Assembly: GCF_964204645.1 (NCBI RefSeq)
Contig: NC_134032.1
Span: 15,116,275-15,180,274, forward strand
Source: Tubulanus polymorphus
Lineage: Eukaryota; Animalia; Nemertea
Length of the DNA: 64,000 bases
Direction: 5' to 3'
Shown here: one piece after another, positions 21,310 through 56,682 of the stretch
Numbering within the stretch: the stretch's first letter is position 1
Layout of the letters: every line of letters starts with the position of its first letter
The notes under the pieces: generated by a model
Databases searched by the model: none
Seen by the model: only the letters and a program-made list of their open reading frames with translations
Told to the model about the DNA's origin: nothing
Made by a program: the position numbers and the translations under genes

Positions 21310-21340
<31 letters not shown>

Positions 21341-27300: not shown

Positions 27301-30300
27301 GATAGTAAACGCCACCTACACCGTGGCGCGTGATATTGCCGATGCGACTGTACCACACGCACACTACTCCCTGTGCCACAAATAACAAACTAATACAGAT
27401 AATCAGGTTCTAAAATGGATGCTTATTGCGAGCGTTGATAAAATGACTTCAATTAATGATGATGAAACAATCATTCCAGTCGTGCTAATATCAGACACGC
27501 GACGGGTGTGGCGAGACATGTGGTGCGGCGTGTGGCGGGGCATGTGGAGAGGCGTGTGGGGAGGCATGTGGCGCGTGTGGGGAGGCATGTGGCGCAGCGT
27601 GTGGGGACGGGTGTGGGGAGGGGTGTGGCGAGGCGTGTGGCGAGACATGTGGCGCGGCGTGTGGCGCAGCGTTTAGCGAGGCATGTGGGGAGACATGTGG
27701 CGGGGCGTGCGAGGAGGCATGTGGTGAGACATGTGGCGCGGCGTGTGGCGAGACATGTGGCGCAGCGTGTGGCGAGACATGTGGCGCGGCGTGGGGCAAG
27801 ACATGTGGCGAGGCGTTTAGCGAGGCATGTAGGGAGGTATGTGGGGAGACATGTGGCGCGGCGTGTGGCGAGACGTATGGTTCGGCGTGTAGCGAGGCGT
27901 GTGGGGAGGCATGTGGCGAGGCGTGTGGGGAGGTGTGTAGCGAGGCGTGTGGCGGGGCGTGTGGCGAGACATGTGGCGCGGCGTGTGGGGAGGCGTGTAG
28001 CGCAGCGTGTGGGGAGGCGTGTAGCGTGGCATGTGGGGAGGCGTGTGGGGAGGGGTGTGGGGAGGCGTTTAGCGAGGCGTGTGGGGAGGCATGTAGCGTG
28101 GCGTGTGGGGAGGCGTGTAGCGAGGCGTGTGGCGAGGCGTGTGGCGGGGCATGTGGGGAGGCGTGTAGCGCGGCGTGTGGGGAGGCGTGTAGCGTGGCAT
28201 GTGGGGAGGCGTGTGGGGAGGGGTGTGAGGTGGCGTTTAGCGAGGCGTGTGGAGAGGCATGTAGCGTGGCGTGTGGGGAGGCGTGCGGGGAGGCGTGTAG
28301 GGAGGCGCGCGGGGAGGCGTGTGGAGAGGGGTGTAGCGAGGCGTGATGCGCTTATACTCTAAAACATATATCAGTCATCTCTCTCCCTGGGGAGAAGTTA
28401 CACCGAGCTGCTAACAAGCGCTCAGGAGTTGCAGGTACCCATTTACTCCTGGGTGGAGAGAGGTGATGAGGATAAGTGTCTCGCGCGAGGACGCTACGGC
28501 AATGTACGGGGTTCGAATCAACGACCTGGATTCCCAGAGCCGCACCGCTCCACACAGAACACACACAGAAAACATCAAACTAGAATTATAACTTACCGGT
28601 CGTACGGGCGACAGCGGCACGGTAGAGTCAAGGTCAAATGTGGTGTTCTAGAAAAATAAAATGATTTTAAAGATTAAATCATGCATTTTCTCTGCCAGAA
28701 ACTGAATTCATCAAATCTATTAAATATTCCAGTGAGATGAATTGTAAAGAGCCCCCCGAGTATTAGGGTAATCAACAGACCCTCCACACAATTTGATGCA
28801 GTAAACCCGATTAAGGCGGTTTCTCTATTATTTGTCGTCATGCGTTGATATAGAATATTTTGTTTGTTACACAATATCCGGCCGGAACTAATAACCGAAT
28901 GCACTATAGTTCGGTCTTAACGTATTTCACGGTGTCGGCCATTTTGGAAATGGGTTGAAAACTACAGCGACCGGCGGCCGGGCAGCAGACACACTGATAG
29001 GTAACTTGTCGAATGTTCAGATTTTGGCAGCACGCGCTGAAGCTGCTCGTAATTCCCTTAGACACATAAGAGGGAATGGGAGTTTAGGATACTGACTGAT
29101 TGAAATATTTATACTTACGGGCGTCAGCCGCGGCGACTGCCTCCGATGAGGAGGAGCTCTACCCTAGAAACAACAATAATATAAACATAATTAGTCAAAT
29201 GCATTAAGGGTTGAATTTTCAAACATTTCTTATGCGATGTTTTTTATTTCAAAATCAAAATTTTATTTCAAAATTTGATGCACAATTTTTACATGATGTT
29301 AAATGTTCCTTAATAACACATACATTGGTGAAACAATGCGACATTTGGCCACAAGGGTAAAGGAGCATGGAACTTCGCCTTCAGCAATTAAGGAACATTT
29401 AACATCATGTAAAAATTGTGCGTCAAATTTTTCTTTAAAAAACAACTTTTCAATCGTTGATTCTGGAAAAAATGACTTTGAAATCACCATCAAAGAGGCA
29501 TTTTTTATTTCAACTTGTCGGTTTTAATCATTTTAAGCGAACAAAAAGTATTCCGGGATGGAATCCACGAATCAAGGTCCCCAGCGATGTGGCGCCGGTA
29601 TCGGGTCCCCAGCGATATGGCGCCCGTATCGGGTCCCCAGCGATATGGCGCCGGTATTGGGTCCCCAGCGATGTGGCGCCGCTATCGGGTCCCCAGCGAT
29701 GTGGCGCCCGTATCGGGTCCCCAGCGATATGGCGCCCGTATCGGGTCCCCAGCGATATGGCGCCCGTATCGGGTCCCCAGCGATGTGGCGCCCGTATCGG
29801 GTCCCCAGCGATGTGGCGCCCGTATCGGGTCCCCAGCGATGAGGGGCTTTTTCAGTTTCTTCATTTAATTAATTAGATCTCTGTTATTTCAACAAGAATC
29901 GTTTAGAGACCATTTATTTATTTGAGCATCTTTAAATTGTTCAATCAATGGAGCCTTGGATCCAGCCAGATTAAAAACCGACCCCTTACATACTCATCAA
30001 CCTAACAGGTGCAACAAACAGTAAAGGTTTTCAATATAAGGGATCGTTCAATTCTCCGTGCCTTGTTCTTAACCCTCCTACTCCTGTACGCACACGCATT
30101 ACAATAATGATTTTTACTTATATAAATGGTGGCTTTTATTGTTTAGAGCCGACCCTGATATGAGTATAAACAGTAACGAGGGGACTAGAGATACCGTACC
30201 CACTTGGGAAGTGGTCGCAAATACTCAACAATCTGACAATCTTTAAATTCAACGCCCCCTGGTGAATAATAAACCAAAGATATTGAAAATCAATAAAACC

Positions 30301-37840: not shown

Positions 37841-38445
37841 ACCACACCCTGTATACCGAGCATTGATTGACCAAATCAACGATATGGTTTGAATCTGGTT
37901 AGAGTATGAAATGCACGAAGACGCGTGTTGATTGGTTGAGGCTGGTGTGGGTCACTGACCGGTGACAAGCGGTCAGCTGATCGAGTGAGTGCAACAACTT
38001 TTCAACTTTTCGTTAAATCAGCGTAAATATTATACACATGTATTGAAGGCCTTAGTGAATGATAAACTGATGATAAACACATCAGATCAGTTCCTAGCTC
38101 CAGTTAGTAATTATTAGATTAATACTAGCAGTTCCGTATCTAAATAAGAAATCAATCAGTCTTGTACTGTCACATTTCTACTTGACAATCGTCTAGTTAG
38201 ATAATTATCATAATATTCTATATCAACGCATGACAACTAATAATAGAGAAACCTCTCTAATCGGGTTTACTGCATCAAATTGTGTGGAGTATTTTAAACA
38301 GGGTCCTGAAGGGTCTGTTGATTACCCTAATCCTCAGAGGGCTCTTAACAGTTCATCTCACTGAAATATTTAATAGATTTGATGAATTCAGTTTGTCGCA
38401 GTGAAAATGCATGATTTAATCTTTAAAATCATTTTATTTTTCTAG

Positions 38446-39301
38446 AACACGACATTAGACTCTACTATACCGCTGTCGCCCGTACGACCGGTAAGTTATA
38501 ATTCTAGTTTGATGTTTTTCAGTACTGTAAGATGACAATGATGTATATCCCAAATAAATGTCTCATATTCGTGATCCTTAATAATTTTTCTTTTCATTTC
38601 AGCTGAAACTATAGCCAATGAATTGGCAAAGCAACAAGGAGAGTCTGAACAAGGCTACGAGGCAGCTACCCAACTTTGGGAAACAGTTATCAGCTGCACC
38701 AAAACGATAAATCCCACGCTGTCTCAACAGCCTGAGGAGCCAGCTCCACTAACCCCTGAGTTGGCTCCTTCGCAGGTGGTGGACCCTGTTTCGCCGGTGC
38801 AGGTGTTTATAGGTGTTTATTTGTTGAATCGCTGGTTTTCTCATTTTGATTTTTAATACTGATATTTAATTCTATGCTAAACAAATTTTTTATTTTTTCT
38901 CTTTACAGACACGACCACCGCCTAAAAAAACCAGATCAAAACGAAAAAGAAAAGTTGCGGTCGTCGTGGCTCCTCAGGGAGGGGAGGCAAGAGTAGCCCC
39001 TGCGGATGGTGCGGCTGACGAAGGTAATCGGGAGGAAGGGGAGGGGATAAATAGGAAGCGGCCGAGGAGGGATGGTGGTGGGGCTGGGGATGGTGCGGGT
39101 CCTGCTCCTCCTGCTCCTCCATCCGTATCTCGGGCAGTCACTCGTTCACTCGCCAAAAAGCTGGCGAGTGAACGAGTGGCCCGAGAGGTAGAGGTGGTGG
39201 CCCGGCATACGGATGGAATGTGGGAGGAGCGGCTGCGTTCTGGGACAATTCCGGATTTGTTGACTGATTTGAAAAATATTCTTTCAGTGAAGGGATATTA
39301 G
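38446..39301 (+). pseudogene. 5'-truncated inverted paralog of copy A: exon-6 homolog 38446-38490, alternative exon 38603-38802, full terminal exon 38909-39301
   Basis: Reverse-complement similarity to intron 5/exon 6 and to the terminal exon, 3' hairpin and 38-bp satellite of copy A; no exon 1-5 homologs are visible upstream. Confidence 0.7.
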
Positions 39302-39412: not shown

Positions 39413-39962
39413 ACAGTTCCACAGTTTGGTGCGTTTAATTACACATGGACTCAGTTCCACAGTTCGGTGCGTTTAATTATACCTGGACTCAGTTCCACAG
39501 TTCGGTGCGTTTAATTATACCTGGACTCAGTTCCACAGTTCGGTGCGTTTAATTACACCTGGACTCAGTTCCACAGTTCGGTGCGTTTAATTACACCTGG
39601 ACTCAGCTCCACAGTTCGGTGCGTTTAATTACACCTGGACTCAGCTCCACAGTTCGGTGCGTTTAATTACACCTGGACTCACTTCCACAGTTCGGTGCGT
39701 TTAATTACACCTGGACTCAGTTCCACAGTTCGGTGCATTTAATTACACCTGGATCCAGTTCCACAGTTCGGTGCGTTTAATTATACCTGGACTCAGTTCC
39801 ACAGTTCGATGCGTTTAATTACACCTGGACTCAGTTCCACAGTTCGGTGCGTTTAATTACACCTGGATCCAGTTCCACAGTTCGGTGCGTTTAATTACAC
39901 CTGGACTCAGTTCCACAGTTCGGTGCATTTAATTACACCTGGATCCAGTTCCACAGTTCGGT
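39413..39962. repeat. 38-bp satellite x~14, reverse complement of 17288-19212
   Basis: Unit CCTGGACTCAGTTCCACAGTTCGGTGCGTTTAATTACA. Confidence 0.95.
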
Positions 39963-40399
39963 TTCCTCAAATTGGCGGCCATATTGAGCAGGGGTGTTTT
40001 TTGACTGTCGCAGCAAATTGCTTCTTTTAAATCTAGTAACATAGGTGTAATGTGGTCCACGATAACACGCTGTTGACAATCTAATTTTTCACTCTTCCAA
40101 TATGGCCGCCATTGCAGACATGTACAATCTTATCCATTAATGAATTAATTATAGTATTTTGAGTTTATCTTAATTTACATTTTTGAAGAGAAATCCATTA
40201 GTAGCCGAGGTGTCTGACTTGTACTCTACATTCTGTTGAGCGATTGTTACTAGATTCACCTGTTTATTAGTTACTTTATGTTCAGTACTCTACTGAGTGA
40301 ACCATATACAGGAATAATTGACTAAACTGTGCATGATTCATGTCTGATATAATAATCTATTTTCATATGATTTAATTGTTCTATTTATTTTTCTAGAAT

Positions 40400-42691
40400 A
40401 TGCCAAAAGCAAAAAAAAAATCGGTTTGTGGGCACGGGCGGCCCGGGCCGCTGACGTCAAGTCCTTCGGTAAGTTCAAATTTACTGCTTTCATGCTAATT
40501 TATTCATACTATGTTAGAAAACAAGTGTAAAAACAGGTAGAGTCAAAGTGTTCTGTTAAATAACACCGTTAATGAGACCAATGATAAACATGAACGAATT
40601 TGGTAACGTTTTGAATAAAATGGTATTTGAATTGAAGGATTCTAAAGCAATTTCACTTTCACTTCTCCTGGCACAATACAAATCCAAACAGCCTATTTTA
40701 CCATTATGGCCTGTATTTTGACACTTGTTTTCTCCCAAATATGACGAGGCCATCGCAAAATAAAGCGGTCACGGTGTAGGATGTCCCATAAGTCACATTT
40801 ATCATTGATTCTTTCCTGTATTTTACTCTTAATTGTTGAAATTCAAGAAAAATGCTATATTCTATTTTATCATCTTATTTTAAAGTCTAATTAAGGGGGA
40901 GGGGGAAGGGGAGGGGGAAAGTTGACATAAAAAACCTTGCATTAGAAATGCTTAAAAATTCAACCCTTAATGAATTTGACTAATTATGTTTATATTATTG
41001 TTGTTTCTAGGGTAAAGCTCCTCATCAGAGGCCGTCACCGAGATTGACGCCCGTAAGTATAAATATTTCAATCAGTCAGTATCCTAAACTCCCATTCCCT
41101 CTTATATGTCTAAGGGAATTATGAGCAGCTTCAGCGCGTGCTGCCAAAATCTGAACATTCGACATGGTAACTATTAAAGTGTCTGCCATGCCGTGGTAGC
41201 CCGGACGGAGGCGCCACAGGTTCAGGCTCCTGGCCCGCGCAGGTCGCCCCGGAAAAAACCGTAGGGAAGTCGACTCACGGGAGGTTTGGGGCATCTACAC
41301 ATAAGAAAAGAAAACGTGCGGCTCCTCCCCAACAGCCAGATGCTTCGGTGGAGTCGAGTGATGAGGAGTTGCCTACTGCACCTAGATCCTCACCGCCAGG
41401 GTCCTCACCACCAGCGCGACGACCTTCACCACCACCAAAAACAACTGCTCCGGCGGGGGTAGAACCCTCCCCCGTTGTAGAGCTCGTGCGTGGCCCTGGC
41501 TGGTCAAGGATAATTGAGTTTGACGACCCAATTACCTTGCTCTGCGACGTCGAAGGGGCATTCCAAGGGGAATATCAACTCATCAAGCGGAGGAGAACCC
41601 ATTGATTTGGTAAGAGTACATAGGAAGCAGCTGAGCTGATGGTGTTGGGGCTGGCGAGTGATCGAGTGGCCCGAGAGGTAGAGGTGGTGGCCTGGCATAC
41701 CGATGGAGAGTGGGAGGAGCGTTAATTACCCCAATACCCGGGGGGCTCTTTACGGTTCATCTCACCGACAAATTTAATAGATTTGATGAATTCAGTTTGT
41801 CGCAGTGAAAATGCACGATTTAATCTTTAAAATCATTTTATTTTTCTAGAACACGACATTAGACTCTACTATACCGCTGTCGCCCGTACGACCGGTAAGT
41901 TATAATTCTAGTTTGATGTTTTTCAGTACTGTAAGATGACAATGATGTATATCCCAAATAAATGTCTCATATTCGTGATCCTTAATAATTTTTCTTTTCA
42001 TTTCAGCTGAAACTATAGCCAATGAATTGGCAAAGCAACAAGGAGAGTCTGAACAAGGCTACGAGGCAGCTACCCAACTTTGGGAAACAGTTATCAGCTG
42101 CACCAAAACGATAAATCCCACGCTGTCTCAACAGCCTGAGGAGCCAGCTCCACTAACCCCTGAGTTGGCTCCTTCGCAGGTGGTGGACCCTGTTTCGCCG
42201 GTGCAGGTGTTTATAGGTGTTTATTTGTTGAATCGCTGGTTTTCTCATTTTGATTTTTAATACTGATATTTAATTCTATGCTAAACAAATTTTTTATTTT
42301 TTTCTCTTTACAGACACGACCACCGCCTAAAAAAACCAAAAGAAAAAGAAAAGTTGCGATCGTCGTGGCTCCTCAGGGAGGGGAGGCAAGAGTAGCCCCT
42401 GCGGATGGTGCGGCTGACGAAGGTAATCGGGAGGAAGGGGAGGGGATAAATAGGTAGCGGCCGAGGAGGGATGGTGGTGGGGCTGGGGATGGTGCGGGTC
42501 CTGCTCCTCCTGCTCCTCCATCCGTATCTCGGGCGGTCACTCGTTCACTCGCCAAACAATGTTGTTCCAGCACTACAGCATTGATCAGAAAGAGTCCGAG
42601 GGCGGATGTATGGTGTCTCCTAGCCGGCGGCCATATTTATAGTGAAGCCAAGGTCAAATTGGCGGCCATATTGAGCAGGGGTGTTTTTTGA
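40400..42691 (+). pseudogene. Array unit 1: paralog with an in-frame TAG in the terminal exon
   Basis: Exons 1, 5 (42-nt variant GKAPHQRPSPRLTP) and 6 are present; the terminal exon reads AAT AGG TAG at ~42452 where other units read AAT AGG AAG. Confidence 0.65.
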
Positions 42692-43086
42692 CTGTCGCAG
42701 CAAATTGCTTCTTTTAAATCCAGTAACATAGGTGTAATGTGGTCTACGATAACACGCTGTTGAAAATCTAATTTTTCACTCTTCCAATATGGCCGCCATT
42801 GCAGACATGTACAATCTTATCCATTAATGAATTAATTATAGTATTTTGAGTTTATCTTAATTTACATTTTTGAAGAGAAATCCATTAGTAGCCGAGGTGT
42901 CTGACTTGTACTCTACATTCTGTTGAGCGATTGTTACTAGATTCACCTGTTTATTAGTTACTTTATGTTCAGTACTCTACTGAGTGAACCATATACAGGA
43001 ATAATTGACTAAACTGTGCATGATTCATGTCTGATATAATAATCTATTTTCATATGATTTAATTGTTCTATTTATTTTTCTAGAAT

Positions 43087-45375
43087 ATGCCAAAAGCAAA
43101 AAAAAAATCGGTTTGTGGGCACGGGCGGCCCGGGCCGCTGACGTCAAGTCCTTCGGTAAGTTCAAATTTACTGCTTTCATGCTAATTTATTCATACTATG
43201 TTAGAAAACAAGTGTAAAAACAGGTAGAGTCAAAGTGTTCTGTTAAATAACACCGTTAATGAGACCAATGATAAACATGAACGAATTTGGTAACGTTTTG
43301 AATAAAATGGTATTTGAATTGAAGGATTCTAAAGCAATTTCACTTTCACTTCTCCTGGCACAATACAAATCCAAACAGCCTATTTTACCATTATGGCCTG
43401 TATTTTGACACTTGTTTTCTCCCAAATATGACGAGGCCATCGCAAAATAAAGCGTTCACGGTGTAGGATGTCCCATAAGTCACATTTATCATTGATTCTT
43501 TCCTGTATTTTACTCTTAATTGTTGAAATTCAAGAAAAATGCTATATTCTATTTTATCATCTTATTTTAAAGTCTAATTAAGGGGGAGGGGGAAGGGGAG
43601 GGGGAAAGTTGACATAAAAAACCTTGCATTAGAAATGCTTAAAAATTCAACCCTTAATGAATTTGACTAATTATGTTTATATTATTGTTGTTTCTAGGGT
43701 AGAGCTCCTCCTGCCTCAAGGCCGTCACCGCGGCTGACGCCCGTAAGTATAAATATTTCAATCAGTCAGTATCCTAAACTCCCATTCCCTCTTATATGTC
43801 TAAGGGAATTATGAGCAGCTTCAGCGCGTGCTGCCAAAATCTGAACATTCGACATGGTAACTATTAAAGTGTCTGCCATGCCGTGGTAGCCCGGACGGAG
43901 GCGCCACAGGTTCAGGCTCCTGGCCCGCGCAGGTCGCCCCGGAAAAAACCGTAGGGAAGTCGACTCACGGGAGGTTTGGGGCATCTACACATAAGAAAAG
44001 AAAACGTGCGGCTCCTCCCCAACAGCCAGATGCTTCGGTGGAGTCGAGTGATGAGGAGTTGCCTACTGCACCTAGATCCTCACCGCCAGGGTCCTCACCA
44101 CCAGCGCGACGACCTTCACCACCACCAAAAACAACTGCTCCGGCGGGGGTAGAACCCTCCCCCGTTGTAGAGCTCGTGCGTGGCCCTGGCTGGTCAAGGA
44201 TAATTGAGTTTGACGACCCAATTACCTTGCTCTGCGACGTCGAAGGGGCATTCCAAGGGGAATATCAACTCATCAAGCGGAGGAGAACCCATTGATTTGG
44301 TAAGAGTAAATAGGAAGCAGCTGAGCTGATGGGGCTGGCGAGTGATCGAGTGGCCCGAGAGGTAGAGGTGGTGGCCATGCACACCGATAGAGAGTGGGAG
44401 GAGCGTTAATTACCCCAATACCCGGAGGGGCTCTTTACGGTTCATCTCACCGACAAATTTAATAGATTTGATGAATTCAGTTTGTCGCAGTGAAAATGCA
44501 CGATTTAATCGTTAAAATCATTTTATCTTTCTAGAACACAACATTAGACTCGACAGTGCCGCTGTCGCCCGTACGACCGGTAAGTTATAATTCTAGTTTG
44601 ATGTTTTTCAGTACTGTAAGATGACAATGATGTATATCCCAAATAAATGTCTCATATTCATGATCCTTAATAATTTTTCTTTTCATTTCAGCTGAAACTA
44701 TAGCCAATGAATTAGCAAAACAACAAGGAGAGTCTGAACAAGGCTACGAGGCAGCTACCCAACTTTGGGAAACAGTTATCAGCTGCACCAAAACGATAAA
44801 TCCCAAGCTGTCTCAACAGCCTGAGGAGCCAGCTCCACTAACCCCTGAGTTGGCTCCTTCGCAGGTGGTGGACCCTGTTTCGCCGGTGCAGGTGTTTATA
44901 GGTGTTTATTTGTTGAATCGCTGGTTTTCTCATTTTGATTTTTAATACTGATATTTAATTCTATGCTAAACAAATTTTTTATTTTTTCTCTTTACAGACA
45001 CGACCACCGCCTAAAAAAACCAAAAGAAAAAGAAAAGTTGCGATCGTCGTGGCTCCTCAGGGAGGGGAGGCAAGAGTAGCCCCTGCGGATGGTGCGGCTG
45101 ACGAAGGTAATCGGGAGGAAGGGGAGGGGATAAATAGGAAGCGGCCGAGGAGGGATGGTGGTGGGGCTGGGGATGGTGCGGGTCCTGCTCCTCCTGCTCC
45201 TCCATCCGTATCTCGGGCGGTCACTCGTTCACTCGCCAAACAATGTTGTTCCAGCACTACAGCATTGATCAGAAAGAGTCCGAGGGCGGATGTATGGTGT
45301 CTCCTAGCCGGCGGCCATATTTATAGTGAAGCCAAGGTCAAATTGGCGGCCATATTGAGCAGGGGTGTTTTTTGA
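43087..45375 (+). CDS. Array unit 2: potentially intact ~178-aa short paralog with a new C-terminus
   Basis: Phase-0 exons 43087-43155, 43698-43742, 44535-44579 and 44998-45375 join in frame with intact GTAAG/AG sites if the phase-1 alternative exon is skipped. Confidence 0.5.
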
Positions 45376-45776
45376 CTGTCGCAGCAAATTGCTTCTTTTA
45401 AATCTAGTAACATAGGTGTAATGTGGTCCACGATAACACGCTGTTGACAATCTAATTTTTCACTCTTCCAATATGGCCGCCATTGCAGACATGTACAATC
45501 TTATCCATTAATGAATTAATTATAGTATTTTGAGTTTATCTTAATTTACATTTTTGAAGAGAAATCCATTAGTAGCCGAGGTGTCTGACTTGTACTCTAC
45601 ATTCTGTTGAGCGATTGTTACTAGATTCACCTGTTTATTAGTTACTTTATGTTCAGTACTCTACTGAGTGAACCATATACAGGAATAATTGACTAAACTG
45701 TGCATGATTCATGTCTGATATAATATCTATAATCTATTTTCATATGATTTAATTGTTCTATTTATTTTTCTAGAAT

Positions 45777-48078
45777 ATGCCAAAAGCAAACAAAAAATCG
45801 GTTTGTGGGCACGGGCGGCCCGGGCCGCTGACGTCAAGTCCTTCGGTAAGTTCAAATTTACTGCTTTCATGCTAATTTATTCATACTATGTTAGAAAACA
45901 AGTGTAAAAACAGGTAGAGTCAAAGTGTTCTGTTAAATAACACCGTTAATGAGACCAATGATAAACATGAACGAATTTGGTAACGTTTTGAATAAAATGG
46001 TATTTGAATTGAAGGATTCTAAAGCAATTTCACTTTCACTTCTCCTGGCACAATACAAATCCAAACAGCCTATTTTACCATTATGGCCTGTATTTTGACA
46101 CTTGTTTTCTCCCAAATATGACGAGGCCATCGCAAAATAAAGCGGTCACGGTGTAGGATGTCCCATAAGTCACATTTATCATTGATTCTTTCCTGTATTT
46201 TACTCTTAATTGTTGAAATTCAAGAAAAATGCTATATTCTATTTTATCATCTTATTTTAAAGTCTAATTAAGGGGGAGGGGGAAGGGGAGGGGGAAAGTT
46301 GACATAAAAAACCTTGCATTAGAAATGCTTAAAAATTCAACCCTTAATGAATTTGACTAATTATGTTTATATTATTGTTGTTTCTAGGGTAGAGCTCCTC
46401 CTGCCTCAAGGCCGTCACCGCGGCTGACGCCCGTAAGTATAAATATTTCAATCAGTCAGTATCCTAAACTCCCATTCCCTCTTATATGTCTAAGGGAATT
46501 ATGAGCAGCTTCAGCGCGTGCTGCCAAAATCTGAACATTCGACATGGTAACTATTAAAGTGTCTGCCATGCCGTGGTAGCCCGGACGGAGGCGCCATAGG
46601 GTTCAGGCTCCTGGCCCGCGCAGGTCGCCCCGGAAAAAACCGTAGGGAAGTCGACTCACGGGAGGTTTGGGGCATCTACACATAAGAAAAGAAAACGTGC
46701 GGCTCCTCCCCAACAGCCAGATGCTTCGGTGGAGTCGAGTGATGAGGAGTTGCCTACTGCACCTAGATCCTCACCGCCAGGGTCCTCACCACCAGCGCGA
46801 CGACCTTCACCACCACCAAAAACAACTGCTCCGGCGGGGGTAGAACCCTCCCCCGTTGTAGAGCTCATGCGTGGCCCTGGCTGGTCAAGGATAATTGAGT
46901 TTGACGACCCAATTACCTTGCTCTGCGACGTCGAAGGGGCATTCCAAGGGGAATATCAACTCATCAAGCGGAGGAGAACCCATTGATTTGGTAAGAGTAC
47001 ATAGGAAGCAGCTGAGCTGATGGTGATGGGGCTGGCGAGTGATCGAGTGGCCCGAGAGGTAGAGGTGGTGGCCTGGCATACCGATGGAGAGTGGGAGGAG
47101 CGTTAATTACCCCAATACCCGGAGGGGCTCTTTACGGTTCATCTCACCGACAAATTTAATAGATTTGATGAATTCAGTTTGTCGCAGTGAAAATGCACGA
47201 TTTAATCTTTAAAATCATTTTATTTTTCTAGAACACAACATTAGACTCGACAGTGCCGCTGTCGCCCGTACGACCGGTAAGTTATAATTCTAGTTTGATG
47301 TTTTTCAGTACTGTAAGATGACAATGATGTATATCCCAAATAAATGTCTCATATTCGTGATCCTTAATAATTTTTCTTTTCATTTCAGCTGAAACTATAG
47401 CCAATGAATTGGCAAAGCAACAAGGAGAGTCTGAACAAGGCTACGAGGCAGCTACCCAACTTTGGGAAACAGTTATCAGCTGCACCAAAACGATAAATCC
47501 CAATTTGTCTCAACAGCCTTAGGAGCCAGCTCCACTAACCCCTGAGTTGGCTCCTTCGCAGGTGGTGGACCCTGTTTCGCCGGTGCAGGTGTTTATAGGT
47601 GTTTATTTGTTGAATCGCTGGTTTTCTCATTTTGATTTTTAATACTGATATTTAATTCTATGCTAAACAAATTTTTCATTTTTTCTCTTTACAGACACGA
47701 CCACCGCCAAAAAAAACCAGATCAAAACGAAAAAGAAAAGTTGCGGTCGTCGTGGCTCCGCAGGGAGGGGGAGCAAGAGTGGTCCCGGCGGATGGTGCGG
47801 CTGACGAAGGTAATCGGGAGGAAGGGGAGGGGATAAATAGGAAGCGGCCGAGGAGGGATGGTGGTGGGGCTGGGGATGGTGCGGGTCCTGCTGCTCCTGC
47901 TCCTCCATCCGTATCTCGGGCGGTCACTCGTTCACTCGCCAAACAATGTTGTTCCAGCACTACAGCATTGATCAGAAAGAGTCCGAGGGCGGATGTATGG
48001 TGTCTCCTAGCCGGCGGCCATATTTATAGTGAAGCCAAGGTCAAATTGGCGGCCATATTGAGCAGGGGTGTTTTTTGA
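45777..48078 (+). CDS. Array unit 3: potentially intact ~180-aa short paralog with a new C-terminus
   Basis: Phase-0 exons 45777-45845, 46388-46432, 47232-47276 and 47695-48078 are in frame; the alternative exon of this unit has a TAG near 47520. Confidence 0.5.
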
Positions 48079-48473
48079 CTGTCGCAGCAAATTGCTTCTT
48101 TTAAATCTAGTAACATAGGTGTGATGTGGTCCACGATAACACGCTGTTGACAATCTAATTTTTCACTCTTCCAATATGGCCGCCATTGCAGACATGTACA
48201 ATCTTATCCATTAATGAATTAATTATAGTATTTTGAGTTTATCTTAATTTACATTTTTGAAGAGAAATCCATTAGTAGCCGAGGTGTCTGACTTGTACTC
48301 TACATTCTGTTGAGCGATTGTTACTAGATTCACCTGTTTATTAGTTACTTTATGTTCAGTACTCTACTGAGTGAACCATATACAGGAATAATTGACTAAA
48401 CTGTGCATGATTCATGTCTGATATAATAATCTATTTTCATATGATTTAATTGTTTTATTTATTTTTCTAGATT

Positions 48474-50775
48474 ATGCCAAAAGCAAGTAGAAAATCTGTG
48501 GGTGGGCGCGGGCGGCCCGGGCCGCTGACGTAGAGTCCTTCGGTAAGTTCAAATTTACTGCTTTCATGCTAATTTATTCATACTATGTTAGAAAACAAGT
48601 GTAAAAACAGGTAGAGTCAAAGTGTTATGTTAAATAACACCGTTAATGAGACCAATGATAAACATGAACGAATTTGGTAACGTTTTGAATAAAATGGTAT
48701 TTGAATTGAAGGATTCTAAAGCAATTTCACTTTCACTTCTCCTGGCACAATACAAATCCAAACAGCCTATTTTACCATTATGGCCTGTATTTTGACACTT
48801 GTTTTCTCCCAAATATGACGAGGCCATCGCAAAATAAAGCGGTCACGGTGTAGGATGTCCCATAAGTCACATTTATCATTGATTCTTTCCTATATTTTAC
48901 TCTTAATTGTTGAAATTCAAAAAAAAAATGCTATATTCTATTTTATCATCTTATTTTAAAGTCTAATTAAGGGGGAGGGGGAAGGGGAGGGGGAAAGTTG
49001 ACATAAAAAACCTTGCATTAGAAATGCTTAAAAATTCAACCCTTAATGAATTTGACTAATTATGTTTATATTATTGTTGTTTCTAGGGTAGAGCTCCTCC
49101 TGCCTCAAGGCCGTCACCGCGGATGACGCCCGTAAGTATAAATATTTCAATCAGTCAGTATCCTAAACTCCCATTCCCTCTAATAGGTCTAAGGGAATTA
49201 TGAGCAGCTTCAGCGCGTGCTGCCAAAATCTGAACATTCGACATGGTAACTATTTAAGTGTCTGCCATGCCGTGGTAGCCCGGACGGAGGCGCCACAGGT
49301 TCAGGCTCCTGGCCCGCGCAGGTCGCCCCGGAAAAAACCGTAGGGAAGTCGACTCACGGGAGGTTTGGGGCATCTACACATAAGAAAAGAAAACGTGCGG
49401 CTCCTCCCCAACAGCCAGATACTTCGGTGGAGTCGAGTGATGAGGAGTTGCCTACTGCACCTAGATCCTCACCGCCAGGGTCCTCACCACCAGCGCGACG
49501 ACCTTCACCACCACCAAAAACAACTGCTCCGGCGGGGGTAGAACACTCCCCCGTTGTAGAGCTCGTGCGTGGCCCTGGCTGGTCAAGGATAATTGAGTTT
49601 GACGACCCAATTACCTTGCTCTGCGACGTCGAAGGGGCATTCCAAGGGGAATATCAACTCATCAAGCGGAGGAGAACCCATTGATTTGGTAAGAGTACAT
49701 AGGAAGCAGCTGAGCTGATGGTGATGGGGCTGGCGAGTGATCGAGTGGCCCGAGAGGTAGAGGTGGTGGCCTGGCATACCGATGGAGAGTGGGAGGAGCG
49801 TTAATTACCCCAATACCCGGGGGGCTCTTTACGGTTCATCTCACCGACAAATTTAATAGATTTGATGAATTCAGTTTGTCGCAGTGAAAATGCACGATTT
49901 AATCTTTAAAATCATTTTATTTTTCTAGAACACAACATTAGACTCTACAGTGCCGCTGTCGCCCGTACGACCGGTAAGTTATAATTCTAGTTTGATGTTT
50001 TTCAGTACTGTAAGATGACAATGATGTATATCCCAAATAAATGTCTCATATTCGTGATCCTTAATAATTTTTCTTTTCATTTCAGCTGAAACTATGGCCA
50101 ATGAATTGGCAAAGCAACAAGGAGAGTCTGAACAAGGCTACGAGGCAGCTACCCAACTTTGGGAAACAGTTATCAGCTGCACCAAAACGATAAATGCCAC
50201 GCTGTCTCAACAGCCTGAGGAGCCAGCAACACTAACCCCTGAGTTGGCTCCTTCGCAGGTGGTTGACCCTGTTTCGCCGGTGCAGGTGTTTATAGGTGTT
50301 TATTTGTTGAATCGCTGGTTTTCTCATTTTGATTTTTAATACTGATATTTAATTCTATGCTAAACAAATTTTTTATTTTTTCTCTTTACAGACACGACCA
50401 CCGCCAAAAAAAACCAGATCAAAACGAAAAAGAAAAGTTGCGGTCGTCGTGGCTCCGCAGGGAGGAGGAGCAAGAGTGGTCCCGGCGGATGGTGCGGCTG
50501 ACGAAGGTAATCGGGAGGAAGGGGAGGGGATAAATAGGAAGCGGCCGAGGAGGGATGGTGGTGGGGCTGGGGATGGTGCGGGTCCTGCTCCTCCTGCTCC
50601 TCCATCCGTATCTCGGGCGGTCACTCGTTCACTCGCCAAACAATGTTGTTCCAGCACTACAGCATTGATCAGAAAGAGTCCGAGGGCGGATGTATGGTGT
50701 CTCCTAGCCGGCGGCCATATTTATAGTGAAGCCAAGGTCAAATTGGCGGCCATATTGAGCAGGGGTGTTTTTTGA
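48474..50775 (+). pseudogene. Array unit 4: premature TAG in exon 1 (MPKASRKSVGGRGRPGPLT*)
   Basis: ACG TAG AGT at ~48531 where other copies read ACG TCA AGT. Confidence 0.65.
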
Positions 50776-51170
50776 CTGTCGCAGCAAATTGCTTCTTTTA
50801 AATCTAGTAACATAGGTGTAATGTGGTCCACGATAACACGCTGTTGACAATCTAATTTTTCACTCTTCCAATATGGCCGCCATTGCAGACATGTACAATC
50901 TTATCCATTAATGAATTAATTATAGTATTTTGAGTTTATCTTAATTTACATTTTTGAAGAGAAATCCATTAGTAGCCGAGGTGTCTGACTTGTACTCTAC
51001 ATTCTGTTGAGCGATTGTTACTAGATTCACCTGTTTATTAGTTACTTTATGTTCAGTACTCTACTGAGTGAACCATATACAGGAATAATTGACTAAACTG
51101 TGCATGATTCATGTCTGATATAATAATCTATTTTCATATGATTTAATTGTTCTATTTATTTTTCTAGAAT

Positions 51171-53460
51171 ATGCCAAAAGCAAAAAAAAAATCCGTTGGC
51201 GGGCGCGGGCGGCCCGGGCCGCTGACGTCAAGTCCTTCGGTTCAAATTTACTGCTTTCATGCTAATTTATTCATACTATGTTAGAAAACAAGTGTAAAAA
51301 CAGGTAGAGTCAAAGTGTTCTGTTAAATAACACCGTTAATGAGACCAATGATAAACATGAACGAATTTGGTAACGTTTTGAATAAAATGGTATTTGAATT
51401 GAAGGATTCTAAAGCAATTTCACTTTCACTTCTCCTGGCACAATACAAATCCAAACAGCCTATTTTACCATTATGGCCTGTATTTTGACACTTGTTTTCT
51501 CCCAAATATGACGAGGCCATCGCAAAATAAAGCGGTCACGGTGTAGGATGTCCCATAAGTCACATTTATCATTGATTCTTTCCTGTATTTTACTCTTAAT
51601 TGTCGAAATTCAAGAAAAATGCTATATTCTATTTTATCATCTTATTTTAAAGTCTAATTAAGGGGGAGGGGGAAGGGGAGGGGGAAAGTTGACATAAAAA
51701 ACCTTGCATTAGAAATGCTTAAAAATTCAACCCTTAATGAATTTGACTAATTATGTTTATATTATTGTTGTTTCTAGGGTAGAGCTCCTCCTGCCTCAAG
51801 GCCGTCACCGCGGCTGACGCCCGTAAGTATAAATATTTCAATCAGTCAGTATCCTAAACTCCCATTCCCTCTTATATGTCTAAGGGAATTATGAGCAGCT
51901 TCAGCGCGTGCTGCCAAAATCTGAACATTCGACATGGTAACTATTAAAGTGTCTGCCATGCCGTGGTAGCCCTGACGGAGGCGCCACAGGTTCAGGCTCC
52001 TGGCCCGCGCAGGTCGCCCCGGAAAAAACCGTAGGGAAGTCGACTCACGGGAGGTTTGGGGCATCTACACATAAGAAAAGAAAACGTGCGGCTCCTCCCC
52101 AACAGCCAGATACTTCGGTGGAGTCGAGTGATGAGGAGTTGCCTACTGCACCTAGATCCTCACCGCCAGGGTCCTCACCACCAGCGCGACGACCTTCACC
52201 ACCACCAAAAACAACTGCTCCGGCGGGGGTAGAACACTCCCCCGTTGTAGAGCTCATGCGTGGCCCTGGCTGGTCAAGGATAATTGAGTTTGACGACCCA
52301 ATTACCTTGCTCTGCGACGTCGAAGGGGCATTCCAAGGGGAATATCAACTCATCAAGCGGAGGAGAACCCATTGATTTGGTAAGAGTACATAGGAAGCAG
52401 CTGAGCTGATGGTGATGGGGCTGGCGAGTGATCGAGTGGCCCGAGAGGTAGAGGTGGTGGCCTGGCATACCGATGGAGAGTGGGAGGAGCGTTAATTACC
52501 CCAATACCCGGGGGGCTCTTTACGGTTCATCTCACCGACAAATTTAATAGATTTGATGAATTCAGTTTGTCGCAGTGAAAATGCACGATTTAATCTTTAA
52601 AATCATTTTATTTTTCTAGAACACGACATTAGACGACACTATACCGCTGTCGCCCGTACGACCGGTAAGTTATAATTCTAGTTTGATGTTTTTCAGTACT
52701 GTAAGATGACAATGATGTATATCCCAAATAAATGTCTCATATTCGTGATCCTTAATAATTTTTCTTTTCATTTCAGCTGAAACTATAGCCAATGAATTGG
52801 CAAAGCAACAAGGAGAGTCTGAACAAGGCTACGAGGCAGCTACCCAACTTTGGGAAACAGTTATCAGCTGCACCAAAACGATAAATCCCACGCTGTCTCA
52901 ACAGCCTGAGGAGCCAGCTCCACTAACCCCTGAGTTGGCTCCTTCGCAGGTGGTGGACCCTGTTTCGCCGGTGCAGGTGTTTATAGGTGTTTATTTGTTG
53001 AATCGCTGGTTTTCTCGTTTTGATTTTTAATACTGATATTTAATTCTATGCTAAACAAATTTTTTATTTTTTCTCTTTACAGACACGACCACCGCCTAAA
53101 AAAACCAAAAGAAAAAGAAAAGTTGCGGTCGTCGTGGCTCCTCAGGGAGGGGAGGCAAGAGTAGCCCCTGCGGATCGTGCGGCTGACGAAGGTAATCGGG
53201 AGGAAGGGGAGGGGATAAATAGGAAGCGGCCGAGGAGGGATGGTGGTGGGGCTGGGGATGGTGCGGGTCCTGCTCCTCCTGCTCCTCCATCCGTATCTCG
53301 GGCGGTCACTCGTTCACTCGCCAAACAATGTTGTTCCAGCACTACAGCATTGATCAGAAAGAGTCCGAGGGCGGATGTATGGTGTCTCCTAGCCGGCGGC
53401 CATATTTATAGTGAAGCCAAGGTCAAATTGGCGGCCATATTGAGCAGGGGTGTTTTTTGA
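51171..53460 (+). pseudogene. Array unit 5: exon-1 splice donor damaged
   Basis: A 4-bp deletion turns TCG|gtaagttc into TCG|gttc at ~51240. Confidence 0.55.
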
Positions 53461-53855
53461 CTGTCGCAGCAAATTGCTTCTTTTAAATCTAGTAACATAG
53501 GTGTAATGTGGTCCACGATAACACGCTGTTGACAATCTAATTTTTCACTCTTCCAATATGGCCGCCATTGCAGACATGTACAATCTTATCCATTAATGAA
53601 TTAATTATAGTATTTTGAGTTTATCTTAATTTACATTTTTGAAGAGAAATCCATTAGTAGCCGAGGTGTCTGACTTGTACTCTACATTCTGTTGAGCGAT
53701 TGTTACTAGATTCACCTGTTTATTAGTTACTTTATGTTCAGTACTCTACTGAGTGAACCATATACAGGAATAATTGACTAAACTGTGCATGATTCATGTC
53801 TGATATAATAATCTATTTTCATATGATTTAATTGTTCTATTTATTTTTCTAGAAT

Positions 53856-56139
53856 ATGCCAAAAGCAAAAAAAAAATCGGTTTGTGGGCACGGGCGGCCC
53901 GGCCCGCTTACGTCAAGTCCTTCGGTTCAAATTTACTGCTTTCATGCTTATTTATTCATACTATGTTAGAAAACAAGTGTAAAAACAGGTAGAGTCAAAG
54001 TGTTCTGTTAAATAACACCGTTAATGAGACCAATGATAAACATGAACGAATTTGGTAACGTTTTGAATAAAATGGTATTTGAATTGAAGGATTCTAAAGC
54101 AATTTCACTTTCACTTCTCCTGGCACAATACAAATCCAAACAGCCTATTTTACCATTATGGCCTGTATTTTGACACTTGTTTTCTCCCAAATATGACGAG
54201 GCCATCGCAAAATAAAGCGGTCACGGTGTAGGATGTCCCATAAGTCACATTTATAATTGATTCTTTCCTGAATTTTACTCTTAATTGTTGAAATTCAAGA
54301 AAAATGCTATATTCTATTTTATCATCTTATTTTAAAGTCTAATTAAGGGGGAGGGGGAAGGGGAGGGGGAAAGTTGACATAAAAATCCTTGCATTAAAAA
54401 TGCTTAAAAATTCAACCCTTAATGAATTTGACTAATTATGTTTATATTATTGTTGTTTCTAGGGTAGAGCTCCTCCTGCCTCAAGGCCGTCACCGCGGCT
54501 GACGCCCGTAAGTATAAATATTTCAATCAGTCAGTATCCTAAACTCCCATTCCCTCTTATATGTCTAAGGGAATTATGAGCAGCTTCAGCGCGTGCTGCC
54601 AAAATCTGAACATTCGACATGGTAACTATTAAAGTGTCTGCCATGCCGTGGTAGCCCGGACGGAGGCGCCACAGGTTCAGGCTCCTGGCCCGCGCAGGTC
54701 GCCCCGGAAAAAACCGTAGGGAAGTCGACTCACGGGAGGTTTGGGGCATCTACACATAAGAAAAGAAAACGTGCGGCTCCTCCCCAACAGCCAGATACTT
54801 CGGTGGAGTCGAGTGATGAGGAGTTGCCTACTGCACCTAGATCCTCACCACCAGGGTCTTCACCACCAGCGCGATGACCTTCACCACCACCAAAAACAAC
54901 TGCTCCGGCCGGGGTAGAACCCTCCCCCGTTGTAGAGCTCGTGCGTGGCCCTGGCTGGTCAAGGATAATTGAGTTTGACGACCCAATTACCTTGCTCTGC
55001 GACGTTGAAGGGGCATTCCAAGGGGAATATCAACTCATCAAGCGGAGGAGAACCCATTGATTTGGTAAGAGTACATAGGAAGCAGCTGAGCTGATGGTGA
55101 TGGGGCTGGCGAGTGATCGAGTGGCCCGAGAGGTAGAGGTGGTGGCCTGGCATACCGATGGAGAGTGGGAGGAGCGTTAATTACCCCAATACCCGGGGGG
55201 CTCTTTACGGTTCATCTCACCGACAAATTTAATAGATTTGATGAATTCAGTTTGTCGCAGTGAAAATGCACGATTTAATCTTTAAAATCATTTTATTTTT
55301 CTAGAACACAACATTAGACGACACTATACCGCTGTCGCCCGTACGACCGGTAAGTTATAATTCTAGTTTGATGTTTTTCAGTACTGTAAGATGACAATGA
55401 TGTATATCCCAAATAAATGTCTCATATTCGTGATCCTTAATAATTTTTCTTTTCATTTCAGCTGAAACTATAGCCAATGAATTGGCAAAGCAACAAGGAG
55501 AGTCTGAACAAGGCTACGAGGCAGCTACCCAACTTTGGGAAACAGTTATCAGCTGCACCAAAACGATAAATCCCACGCTGTCTCAACAGCCTGAGGAGCC
55601 AGCTCCACTAACCCCTGAGTTGGCTCCTTCGCAGGTGGTGGACCCTGTTTCGCCGGTGCAGGTGTTTATAGGTGTTTATTTGTTGAATCGCTGATTTTCT
55701 CATTTTGATTTTTAATACTGATATTTAATTCTATGCTAAACAAATTTTTTATTTTTTCTCTTTACAGACACGACCACCGCCTAAAAAAACCAAAAGAAAA
55801 GTTGCGGTCGTCGTGGCTCCTCAGGGAGGGGAGGCAAGAGTAGCCCCTGCGGATGGTGCGGCTGACGAAGGTAATCGGGAGGAAGGGGAGGGGATAAATA
55901 GGAAGCGGCCGAGGAGGGATGGTGGTGGGGCTGGGGATGGTGCGGGTCCTGCTCCTCCTGCTCCTCCATCCGTATCTCGGGCGGTCACTCGTTCACTCGC
56001 CAAACAATGTTGTTCCAGCACTACAGCATTGATCAGAAAGAGTCCGAGGGCGGATGTATGGTGTCTCCAAGCCGGCGGCCATATTTATAGTGAAGCCAAG
56101 GTCAAATTGGCGGCCATATTGAGCAGGGGTGTTTTTTGA
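53856..56139 (+). pseudogene. Array unit 6: exon-1 splice donor damaged
   Basis: Same gtaa deletion at ~53925 as unit 5. Confidence 0.55.
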
Positions 56140-56534
56140 CTGTCGCAGCAAATTGCTTCTTTTAAATCTAGTAACATAGGTGTAATGTGGTCCACGATAA
56201 CACGCTGTTGACAATCTAATTTTTCACTCTTCCAATATGGCCGCCATTGCAGACATGTACAATCTTATCCATTAATGAATTAATTATAGTATTTTGAGTT
56301 TATCTTAATTTACATTTTTGAAGAGAAATCCATTAGTAGCCGAGGTGTCTGACTTGTACTCTACATTCTGTTGAGCGATTGTTACTAGATTCACCTGTTT
56401 ATTAGTTACTTTATGTTCAGTACTCTACTGAGTGAACCATATACAGGAATAATTGACTAAACTGTGCATGATTCATGTCTGATATAATAATCTATTTTCA
56501 TATGATTTAATTGTTCTATTTATTTTTCTAGAAT

Positions 56535-56682
56535 ATGCCAAAAGCAAAAAAAAATCAGTTTGTGGGCACGGGCGGCCCGGCCCGCTTACGTCAAGTCCTT
56601 CGGTAAGTTCAAATTTACTGCTTTCATGCTAATTTATTCATACTATATTAGAAAACAAGTGTAAAAACAGGTACAGTCAAAG
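56535..56682 (+). pseudogene. Array unit 7: exon 1 only, frameshifted, array ends
   Basis: The A-run in exon 1 is 9 rather than 10 nt; similarity to the unit stops at ~56682. Confidence 0.65.

Follow-up and report, generated by a model that had tools for sequence, protein, structure and literature searches.

The window, by which we mean the whole 64,000-nucleotide stretch of the Tubulanus polymorphus genome under analysis, contains a full-length gene (gene A) and, head-to-head with it, a tandem array of compact derivatives. Gene A occupies 19326..32342 on the minus strand, with coding exons 1-3 and 5-10 as mapped and its two boxes at 33040-33086. It belongs to a family of micro-exon genes (family A) with at least 34 copies in this genome. 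As delimited by direct-repeat and BLAST self-comparison, the array extends from 39967 to 56682 and consists of six full units followed by a partial one of 581 bp, all arranged head to tail (6 full plus 0.2 copies, as counted in a single assembly). The unit size is about 2.69 kb, with 2679-2703 bp between unit starts, and the pairwise identity among units ranges from 98.0 to 99.1%. All of them lie on the plus strand: unit 1 at 39967..42653, unit 2 (the reference unit) at 42654..45337, unit 3 at 45338..48040, unit 4 at 48041..50737, unit 5 at 50738..53422, unit 6 at 53423..56101, and the partial unit 7, corresponding to unit positions 1-582, at 56102..56682. A 38-bp minisatellite (39414..39962) abuts the left end of the array; its sequence is that of the satellite found downstream of the parent gene (17287-19212), in reverse complement. 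Upstream of the array, a single partial copy on the plus strand (38317..39231) carries exon 6, an exon derived from a second orphan gene (gene B) and a complete exon 10.

The composition of a unit is described here for unit 2, in which all exonic pieces lie on the plus strand. Exact GGCGGCCATATT boxes occur three times per unit, namely at 42661-42672 (+) and 42786-42797 (-), together spanning 42661..42797, and at 45310-45321, 35 bp upstream of the first box of unit 3. The window holds 22 such boxes against 0.19 expected, and the genome holds 271 against 9 for controls, an enrichment consistent with a putative promoter element. Exon 1 (43087..43155, 69 nt) bears the ATG and has an acceptor site just before it; this exon (ATGCCAAAAGC...) is found in all seven units, and its acceptor and donor flanks are conserved with the C8, C6 and C3 copies. 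Exon 5 (43698..43742) and exon 6 (44535..44579), both of 45 nt and phase 0-0, are present in all six full units, as is the last exon. Between the two micro-exons lie a dead stretch from the 3' part of the gene B last exon (43876..44297), frameshifted relative to the intact copy in L004, and the remnant of a second gene A exon 10 copy (44299..44405) with an internal deletion ending at GCTGG|CGAGTG. The 5' part of the gene B last exon (44692..44891, 200 nt) is placed between exon 6 and the last exon. It has a good acceptor, requires phase 1 and would break the frame if spliced in, so the long open reading frame needs it to be skipped. The truncated last exon (44998..45375) encodes 125 aa plus a stop codon and contains an NLS-like PPPKKTKRKRKV stretch. 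In units 1-6 this exon, encoding TRPPPKK...KRKV...SVSRAVTRSLAK, is cut after SLAK and continues into a novel tail, which in unit 2 is 45 aa long and crosses the unit junction into the boxes of the next unit. In the parent, the truncation point falls in the loop of a hairpin with a 20-bp stem in exon 10 (19443..19488, minus strand). Promoter activity, splicing and skipping of the B-derived exon are predicted for the units.

The initial annotation had described seven units of about 2.69 kb that all carry the upstream block and exon 1, six of them complete with exons 5, 6 and a truncated terminal exon. The self-comparison, the count of 22 boxes and the last exon ending in ...SLAK agree with this description. 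BLAST self-comparison likewise found no match in the unit to exons 2-4, exons 7-9 or the satellites of the parent, as had been claimed, and the proposed compaction from 13 kb to 2.3 kb corresponds to an ATG-to-stop distance of 13.0 kb in the parent and 2.29 kb in the unit. The unit does carry family A pieces (boxes, exons 1, 5, 6 and the truncated last exon), but the adjacent gene is not its sole source. Two stretches derived from the gene B last exon, of 422 bp and 277 bp, are also present and were missing from that description, as was the deleted remnant of a second exon 10 copy. Moreover, the last exon of the unit belongs to the type carried by contigs C3 and C6 and differs from that of the adjacent gene.

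Judged by its exon content, the array unit is a truncated derivative of family A. In common with the family it has exon 1, whose splice flanks are conserved, the micro-exons 5 and 6 and a last exon bearing the NLS, and in both the variation is concentrated in the micro-exons. Exons 2-4, exons 7-9 and the C-terminal 45 aa of the family are missing from the unit, which also contains pieces of another gene. Its repeat period is 2.69 kb, that of the family about 32 kb, and most of its copies are disabled. Full membership of family A was rejected, since exons 2-4, 7-9 and the C-terminal end of exon 10 have no match in the unit. The parent micro-exons measure 69, 45, 30, 45 and 51 nt, and those of the unit 69, 45 and 45 nt. 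Because all of them are multiples of 3 nt, the compaction preserved the frame.

The reading frames of the individual units were compared, and each lesion reported earlier was recovered. Units 2 and 3 stay open, with models of 23+15+15+125 or 127 aa, giving 178 and 180 aa respectively. Unit 1, which also has a variant exon 5 of 42 nt, contains a stop codon in its truncated last exon; exon 1 of unit 4 carries a TAG; units 5 and 6 have lost the exon-1 donor through an identical 4-bp deletion; and the truncated unit 7 is frameshifted by a 1-bp deletion in an A-run of exon 1. Only two of the six full units thus keep the 178-180 aa frame, while the other four and the partial unit are disabled, a count that fits the proposed "birth-and-death" label. 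Such a majority of broken units speaks against strong selection on the coding sequence.

The protein predicted from an open unit bears the NLS, is basic and has a high content of proline, glycine, alanine and serine; it would be very basic and probably nuclear and disordered. The only part of the parent that looks hydrophobic and structured, encoded by exons 7-9 together with the C-terminal helix-like end, is missing from it. Pfam, a word search and an HMMER search of 1.84 billion proteins yielded no relatives, and none of the exon products contains a Pfam domain, including the HMG box. By inspection, the N-terminus (MPKAKKKSV...) is basic without a hydrophobic core, and a signal peptide is absent, as is a cysteine framework from the unit protein. 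Direct reading of the unit sequence gave no canonical poly(A) signal close after the stop codon, and the longest inverted repeat within a unit is 23 nt, with no long hairpin.

A segmental paralogue located 1.18 Mb away is collinear with the window from 14000 to 60835. At the array position it contains only about half a unit, namely unit positions 1717-2646 plus 205-583, with the same truncation and tail as the array but without the GGCGGCCATATT boxes. The right end of unit 7 coincides with the end of this lone fragment. Outside the exons, diversity among the units is 0.62%, compared with a mismatch of about 4% between the duplicated loci. Since the paralogue holds about half a unit and the non-exon diversity is 0.6%, the amplification was local and recent. 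The earlier proposal of a recent tandem amplification of a compacted, re-shuffled gene version is thereby supported and sharpened.

The three micro-exons differ sharply, and in an unusual way, from this background. Their diversity among units is 7.65% against 0.62% elsewhere in the unit, a 12-fold difference, and 27 of 156 micro-exon columns are variable compared with 27 of 1448 in the rest (odds ratio 11, p=1e-14). Even the 100-bp flanks of the micro-exons show a diversity of only 0.61%, and the variation is bounded by the splice sites. The copies diverge by 7-9% inside exons of 45-69 nt, synonymous sites included. Exons 1 and 5 are hypervariable as a whole, and exon 6 in its 5' half, chiefly at third codon positions. 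The micro-exons have a pS of 0.118 and a pN of 0.054 (pN/pS 0.46), and their synonymous diversity is 19 times the intronic value. The excess is not located at CpG sites; most variable sites are non-CpG and transversions are common. Exon indels are of 3 or 6 bp, the 1-bp frameshift in unit 7 being the exception. Ordinary in-place mutation is an unlikely source of this excess. A pN/pS of 0.4-0.5 means that protein-level constraint on the units is also conceivable. A similar focus on exons was observed in the C6/C3 arrays of full-length copies (20 of 39 versus 38 of 356 columns, p=8e-9). Exon 1 of the two full-length neighbours shows 12% divergence, while its flanks differ by about 1% and the remainder by about 4%; no other exon is clearly elevated between them.

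Some variant clusters are matched by paralogues at other sites, an indication of short-tract exchange. About 60% of the exon minor alleles are shared with other paralogues. The last-exon cluster of units 3 and 4 (a 6-bp insert and 7 substitutions) is the state of the C3 copies, and its substitutions are shared by C6 copies, while the intron flank there is of the local type. Exon 6 of unit 1 is identical to exon 6 of the neighbouring partial copy, and several exon-1 variants also occur in the two full-length genes and the paralogous fragment. Exchange could not be demonstrated for all clusters, because several exon-5 changes of unit 1 are private and the 268-Mb assembly contains no donor for the exon-1 cluster of unit 4 (9 changes in 46 bp), whose closest counterpart there is 88% identical.

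We consider it probable, then, that the locus underwent a genuine, locus-specific and recent amplification of a chimeric mini-gene that is now mostly decaying, and that its exon differences are best explained by short-tract exchange. The 2.69-kb unit combines family A parts (a promoter-type segment, coding exon 1, two micro-exons that keep the frame and the shortened last exon), with dead gene B fragments and another A last-exon copy trapped in its introns. This mosaic was presumably built before the segmental duplication that gave rise to the paralogous locus. Afterwards, unequal recombination between the direct repeats of promoter and exon 1, beside the minisatellite, may have expanded it at the array locus only. 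Transcription and splicing of exons 1-5-6-last would yield a protein of 178-180 aa from each intact unit. As only two of the six full units are coding-capable, the array behaves as a mostly decaying birth-and-death cluster. The excess of micro-exon differences would stem from exchange with family members whose micro-exons are their most diverged parts. Why the family micro-exons diverged faster than the introns initially is left unexplained by exchange.

The same contrast between exons and introns could also arise if the micro-exons, which are GC-rich and palindrome-rich, were struck by an exon-targeted mutational process, a "mutator exon" that produces clusters at synonymous and non-synonymous sites alike. 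The 12-fold concentration ending at the splice sites, the 19-fold synonymous excess, the transversions at mostly non-CpG sites, the like pattern in the C6/C3 arrays, and the palindromes and strong hairpins in the exons agree with it, and conotoxin genes show a comparable contrast of conserved introns and hypervariable exons with trinucleotide indels (PMC3862624). The exon-1 cluster of unit 4, without a template in the assembly, would fit as well, but it continues into the upstream flank and matches other paralogues there, which suggests a tract copied from an unsampled donor. As the sharing of minor alleles fits exchange, only exon 1 is clearly elevated between the full-length neighbours and no mechanism is known, we regard this process as improbable. 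To the same low degree we credit the wider idea that the family micro-exons are the target of dedicated diversification, by exon-limited mutation or by templated swapping from a variant pool, with synonymous and non-synonymous sites changing about 10 times faster than the DNA around them.

Alternatively, the array may be a functional young ampliconic family encoding variants of a small basic nuclear protein, in which selection keeps the exon diversity and concerted evolution homogenises the introns; the product could, for example, act in germline chromatin or in genetic conflict, or compete as a truncated form with the full-length protein. Boxes, start codon, canonical splice sites and NLS-like stretch are kept per unit, the micro-exons and nearly all exon indels are multiples of three, and many of the exon differences leave the peptide unchanged (four Ser codons at one exon-1 position, third positions in exon 6), in line with the pN/pS of 0.46. 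In 24 full-length copies the family last exon is intact with almost no variation, and Drosophila has multicopy, truncated derivatives of sperm basic proteins that are known to function (PMC10120018; bioRxiv 10.1101/2021.08.05.454923). However, four full units and the partial one are disabled at only 0.6% background divergence, the strong acceptor of the B-derived exon threatens the frame, pN/pS lies below rather than above 1, and no HMG box or other domain was detected, so we hold this explanation to be possible but doubtful. A small-RNA source or target locus, in which dsRNA from the head-to-head parent and array or from unit read-through would regulate the family, is very improbable. Parent and array do form inverted arms of about 470 bp with 95% identity, the poly(A) signal is missing close after the stop codon, and hairpin-RNA suppressors of amplified drivers are known (PMC10292708); yet inverted repeats within a unit do not exceed 23 nt, and normal transcripts would not contain both arms because the promoters of parent and array diverge. 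We give hardly any credence to an over-expanded or mis-joined assembly, although the region is packed with minisatellites and the array, at 16.7 kb, is near the length of a single long read: private and shared substitutions and indels separate the units in a structured way, each flank is unique sequence that runs collinear with the paralogous locus, and the right junction is common to the two loci.

Known systems resemble the array in part. Like the Dox family (bioRxiv 10.1101/2021.08.05.454923) and Y-linked Mst77Y (PMC10120018), it is a recent tandem amplification beside satellites of a chimeric and truncated gene copy whose parent encodes a small basic nuclear protein (predicted in our case), with many pseudogenes; it differs in host phylum and in having no HMG box or other recognisable domain. 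An origin of the Dox/Mst77Y type from an HMG-box sperm nuclear basic protein was rejected, the exon products having no Pfam domain. Schistosome MEGs (PMC10526429, PMC4350168) also build their coding sequence from short symmetric exons separated by long introns, with fast-evolving products, and in both parent and unit symmetric micro-exons of no more than 81 bp make up much of the coding sequence. Unlike MEG products, the array protein has no signal peptide and a lysine-rich rather than hydrophobic N-terminus, and its NLS-like stretch suggests a nuclear, not secreted, product. Relationship to MEGs by sequence was not found in Pfam, the word search or HMMER on 1.84 billion proteins. Conotoxin genes combine conserved introns with hypervariable exons and trinucleotide indels (PMC3862624); the array shares the conserved introns, one hypervariable exon class, point changes and 3n indels, but has neither the signal/pro/mature layout nor a cysteine framework, and its pN/pS is below 1. 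Positive selection of the conotoxin kind (dN above dS) on a secreted Cys-rich peptide was rejected on the pN/pS of 0.46 and the lack of a signal peptide, and a hairpin-RNA source with a long inverted repeat inside one transcription unit on the 23-nt maximum and the diverging promoters.

In this one assembly each step can be seen, from the mosaic precursor in the paralogous locus through amplification to early decay. New genes, as well as selfish or conflict genes, are known to arise by recent tandem amplification of truncated, chimeric genes, a process that to our knowledge has hardly been described outside insects and mammals. A "mutator exon" was reportedly once proposed for cone-snail toxin genes, and exon-targeted diversification has, as far as we know, been debated since the conotoxin work and never settled. 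As recognisable relatives of the family are lacking, a function, should it have one, would be new to the biology of ribbon worms. The micro-exon contrast either documents short-tract exchange within a family very cleanly or hints at exon-targeted diversification; if the latter were true, the young 2.69-kb array would be a natural experiment for watching the process against an almost invariant background.

Tandem Repeats Finder, which is blind to periods above 500 bp, reported the minisatellites that crowd the window, and the array was found by a direct-repeat search and by BLAST of one unit against the window. Seven head-to-tail copies start at 39967, 42654, 45338, 48041, 50738, 53423 and 56102, the seventh of which stops at 56682, that is, at unit position 582. 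In the alignment of the six full units, pairwise identity was 98.0-99.1% and diversity outside the exons 0.62%, which bears out the recent tandem amplification proposed in the initial annotation. When the copies were read unit by unit under an exon 1-5-6-last model, units 2 and 3 were open, with 178 and 180 codons respectively. The last exon of unit 1 carries a stop, exon 1 of unit 4 carries a TAG, units 5 and 6 have a common 4-bp deletion that removes the exon-1 donor, and unit 7 is cut off and has a 1-bp deletion in exon 1; the lesions and open frames previously described for units 1-7 were all correct. Because only two of the six full units are open, the most fitting reading of the array is a birth-and-death cluster in which decay predominates. 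It is real in the one assembly, recent and specific to this locus.

The array derives, in chimeric and compacted form, from an orphan micro-exon gene, represented here by gene A, the full-length neighbour that lies head-to-head with it. The exons of gene A were mapped by aligning the minus strand of 19200-33200 with the segmental paralogue, one copy from contig C6 and one from contig C3. They are, on the minus strand, exon 1 (32342-32274, 69 nt), exon 2 (31860-31816, 45 nt), exon 3 (31048-31019, 30 nt), exon 5 (29163-29119, 45 nt), exon 6 (28647-28597, 51 nt), exon 7 (26029-25969, 61 nt), exon 8 (21118-21053, 66 nt), exon 9 (20629-20397, 233 nt) and exon 10 (19715-19326, 130 aa). These nine exons join in frame and need no extra exon, and the same alignment gave no frame-compatible form in gene A of the exon 4 that had been annotated initially. 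As exons 1-6 are all multiples of three, the frame of the unit survives the loss of exons 2-4. A 59-nt block within a gene A intron (30258-30200, minus strand), bordered by AG/GT, is also conserved in the C6 and C3 copies; since its length breaks the frame, it could represent an alternative (poison) exon or else a conserved element without coding function.

Three exact copies of the promoter-type motif GGCGGCCATATT (hereafter boxes) occur in each unit, two direct and 35 bp apart and one inverted 125 bp downstream, giving 22 in the window against 0.19 expected. The boxes of gene A lie at 33040-33086. Genome-wide, GGCGGCCATATT was found 271 times, compared with 9 for the reversed control, and was scattered across all large contigs; going by these counts, the species probably uses it as a general promoter or transcription-factor motif. 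It appears to resemble a YY1-type site, with a YY1-like GCCAT core. A non-coding 5' exon is probably present upstream of the first coding exon, near the boxes. In every copy, at window 43077-43086 and the corresponding positions elsewhere, the first coding exon follows a conserved polypyrimidine tract and an AG.

Segments of the unit map to gene A in a new arrangement, in keeping with the earlier description of a compacted, re-shuffled gene version, and are accompanied by pieces of a second orphan gene, gene B. Unit 2649-2684 plus 1-32 derives from the parent's upstream boxes (33094-33027), and unit 203-670 from the proximal upstream region through exon 1 into the beginning of intron 1. The exon 5 region (956-1223) is followed by the 3' part of the last exon of gene B (1223-1644), a second, internally deleted copy of exon 10 (1646-1752), the exon 6 region (1752-1954), the 5' part of the last exon of gene B (1968-2244) and finally exon 10 as far as ...SLAK (2244-2587). 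This truncated last exon continues into a novel 45-aa tail, which runs over the unit junction and into the boxes of the next unit. Long inverted repeats were absent from the unit (maximum 23 nt). A transposon origin was rejected, as the spacer and flanks contain no transposon-like ORFs, only satellite-derived ones.

The last exon of gene B is a single intact exon of 230 codons at C8:15.899 Mb (L004:4967-5656 of the extracted sequence, minus strand) and is frameshifted at C8:15.017 Mb (L005:4533-5303, plus strand). The two halves of this exon stand apart in the unit and in reversed order. A coding role for them was considered and rejected. In the 3' half the frame is shifted compared with the intact copy; the 5' half (44692-44891 in unit 2, 200 nt) keeps a good acceptor and needs phase 1. 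With exon 6 ending in phase 0, there is a long frame only if the B-derived exon is skipped. Gene B is known here by its last exon alone, which is rich in proline and alanine and includes a TPKKRKR stretch and, at the C-terminal side, the motif ...IIEFDDPITLLCDVE...; a long minisatellite of 24-bp units, whose open frames read as PRYHSGLR repeats, lies just upstream of it.

Exon 10 of gene A contains, within its coding sequence, a strong hairpin (19443-19488, minus strand) with a 20-bp stem and a 6-nt loop, whose DNA folding energy is -23.1 kcal/mol (z=-7.7). The array's last exon is truncated at a point within this loop. The deletion in the exon-10 remnant has its 3' end there too, but a GCTGG microhomology fits that endpoint as well. 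The loop is the site of two independent rearrangement endpoints. Palindrome breakage was not retained as their cause, as the second endpoint may equally well be a GCTGG microhomology deletion, and the coincidence is kept as an observation only.

The window lies at C8:15116275-15180274, and its positions 14000-60835 have a collinear segmental duplicate 1.18 Mb further along C8, which harbors its own full-length gene together with decayed A and B fragments. At the position of the array, this paralogous locus has one fragment, consisting of unit 1717-2646, 59 bp and unit 205-583, followed by the same unique flank. The fragment shows the same truncation point and novel tail as the units and lacks the GGCGGCCATATT boxes. 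Hence the mosaic predates the segmental duplication, and only the present locus has the 2.69-kb repeat. Outside the exons, the diversity among units is 0.62%, against ~2-6% mismatch between the two duplicated loci. The non-exonic differences are mostly singletons, and the few shared sites group neighbours (1-3 versus 4-6, and 5 with 6). Two direct copies of the promoter-exon-1 segment, flanking ~2.1 kb, may have served as a substrate for unequal exchange. The left end of the array adjoins a 38-bp minisatellite that is the reverse complement of the satellite downstream of the parent gene.

The feature of the array most worth following up is variation limited to the exons. In the unit alignment, micro-exons 1, 5 and 6 have 27 variable sites in 156 columns and a diversity of 7.65%, as against 27 in 1448 non-exonic columns and 0.62% (odds ratio 11, Fisher p=1e-14). 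The 100-bp flanks of the micro-exons are at 0.61%, and intermediate values were obtained for the last exon (1.7%) and the B-derived 5' exon (1.9%). Synonymous sites are as affected as others: pS is 0.118 and pN 0.054 in the micro-exons (ratio 0.46), and pN/pS over all model exons is 0.37. One serine codon of exon 1 is TCG, TCA, TCT or TCC among local copies with identical flanks, the peptide NTTLDSTVP of exon 6 is retained despite several third-position changes, and three changes in exon 5 of unit 1 leave Arg-Leu unaltered. Exon 1 of unit 2 contains a short perfect palindrome, TGACGTCA, at 43137-43147, a CRE-like site, and exon 5 a palindrome CGTCA..TGACG around CCGCGG at 43722-43740, of which the variant exon 5 of unit 1 keeps the stem and alters the loop.

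CpG decay was rejected as the source of this variation, because CpG is involved at only 7 of 26 variable micro-exon sites and transversions are frequent. The exon differences form unit-specific clusters, several of which recur elsewhere in the family. In the last exon, units 3 and 4 have a cluster made up of a 6-bp insertion and seven substitutions that agrees exactly with the C3 copies, and the seven substitutions are also found in the C6 copies; the 100 bp of intron directly upstream in these two units have kept the local C8 type. A partial copy 2.7 kb upstream has the same exon 6 sequence as unit 1, and ~8 of 15 minor alleles of exon 1 are shared with the two full-length genes or the paralogous fragment. 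Short-tract gene conversion among paralogues would be expected to leave reticulate sharing of this kind. A pN/pS below 1 would follow from conversion as well, because imported variants have already been filtered in functional copies. In exon 1 of unit 4, nine changes, the stop among them, fall within 46 bp, and no donor for this cluster was found in the 268-Mb assembly (best match 88%). As the variant tract reaches the upstream flank and there matches other paralogues, an unsampled donor, e.g. another allele, is possible. Exchange among paralogues accounts for much of the exon-limited variation, but not for micro-exons that outrun the introns of the family.

The latter pattern is seen in the further copies, of which the last exon of the unit matches at least 32 in the genome. 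On C6, 1.06-1.75 Mb holds a regular array of full-length copies with a ~32-kb period and at least 17 last exons, and on C3 looser clusters of full-length copies lie at 0.41-1.33 Mb. From 20 of the further copies, 400 bp around the exon-5 homologue were compared. The 17 C6 copies are almost identical, and 4 of 39 exon columns versus 6 of 358 flank columns vary (p=0.011); with C6 and C3 copies together the counts are 20 of 39 and 38 of 356 (p=8e-9). Across the genome, the 67-bp stretch of intron preceding exon 5 aligns at ~85% while exon 5 itself is unalignable, and the same holds for exon 1. When the two full-length C8 neighbours are compared, exon 1 alone shows a clear excess (8 of 68, versus ~1% in the flanks). 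The last exon is intact, and its protein nearly invariant, in 24 of 24 full-length copies examined.

The exon products of unit 2, summed and unjoined, comprise 178 residues with a predicted net charge of ~+21, of which 45% are proline, glycine, alanine or serine and 17% are bulky and hydrophobic. The predicted product includes the stretch PPPKKTKRKRKV, presumably of the classical NLS type. Missing from the unit are exons 7-9 and the C-terminal 45 residues encoded by exon 10, which in the parent are the only parts that look hydrophobic and structured. Protein searches used single exons as queries. Six exon products gave nothing above noise in Pfam, a word search gave no match for the parent's last exon or the 230-aa exon of gene B, HMMER with the last exon returned 0 matches among 1.84 billion representative proteins, and the ESM Atlas gave no usable match. 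Public protein sets thus lack the family, or at any rate its last exon. Among known systems, the array comes closest to genes for basic proteins in Drosophila that are truncated and amplified in tandem (bioRxiv 10.1101/2021.08.05.454923; PMC10120018), to the micro-exon genes of schistosomes (PMC10526429) and to conotoxin genes (PMC3862624). By defining tests of each, it falls outside all three, so that it resembles them in behaviour and is not a member.

All clusters of the family lie 0.3-1.8 Mb from contig ends, but a subtelomeric location was rejected because those ends are free of TTAGGG repeats. The right end of C8 (L057) and the left end of C3 (L059) carry the same satellite in the same orientation, with units containing GGACTGGAGTGGA...GGGTTAATA and no TTAGGG. 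C8 and C3 may be neighbours broken within one satellite block; if they adjoin, their gene clusters would become one.
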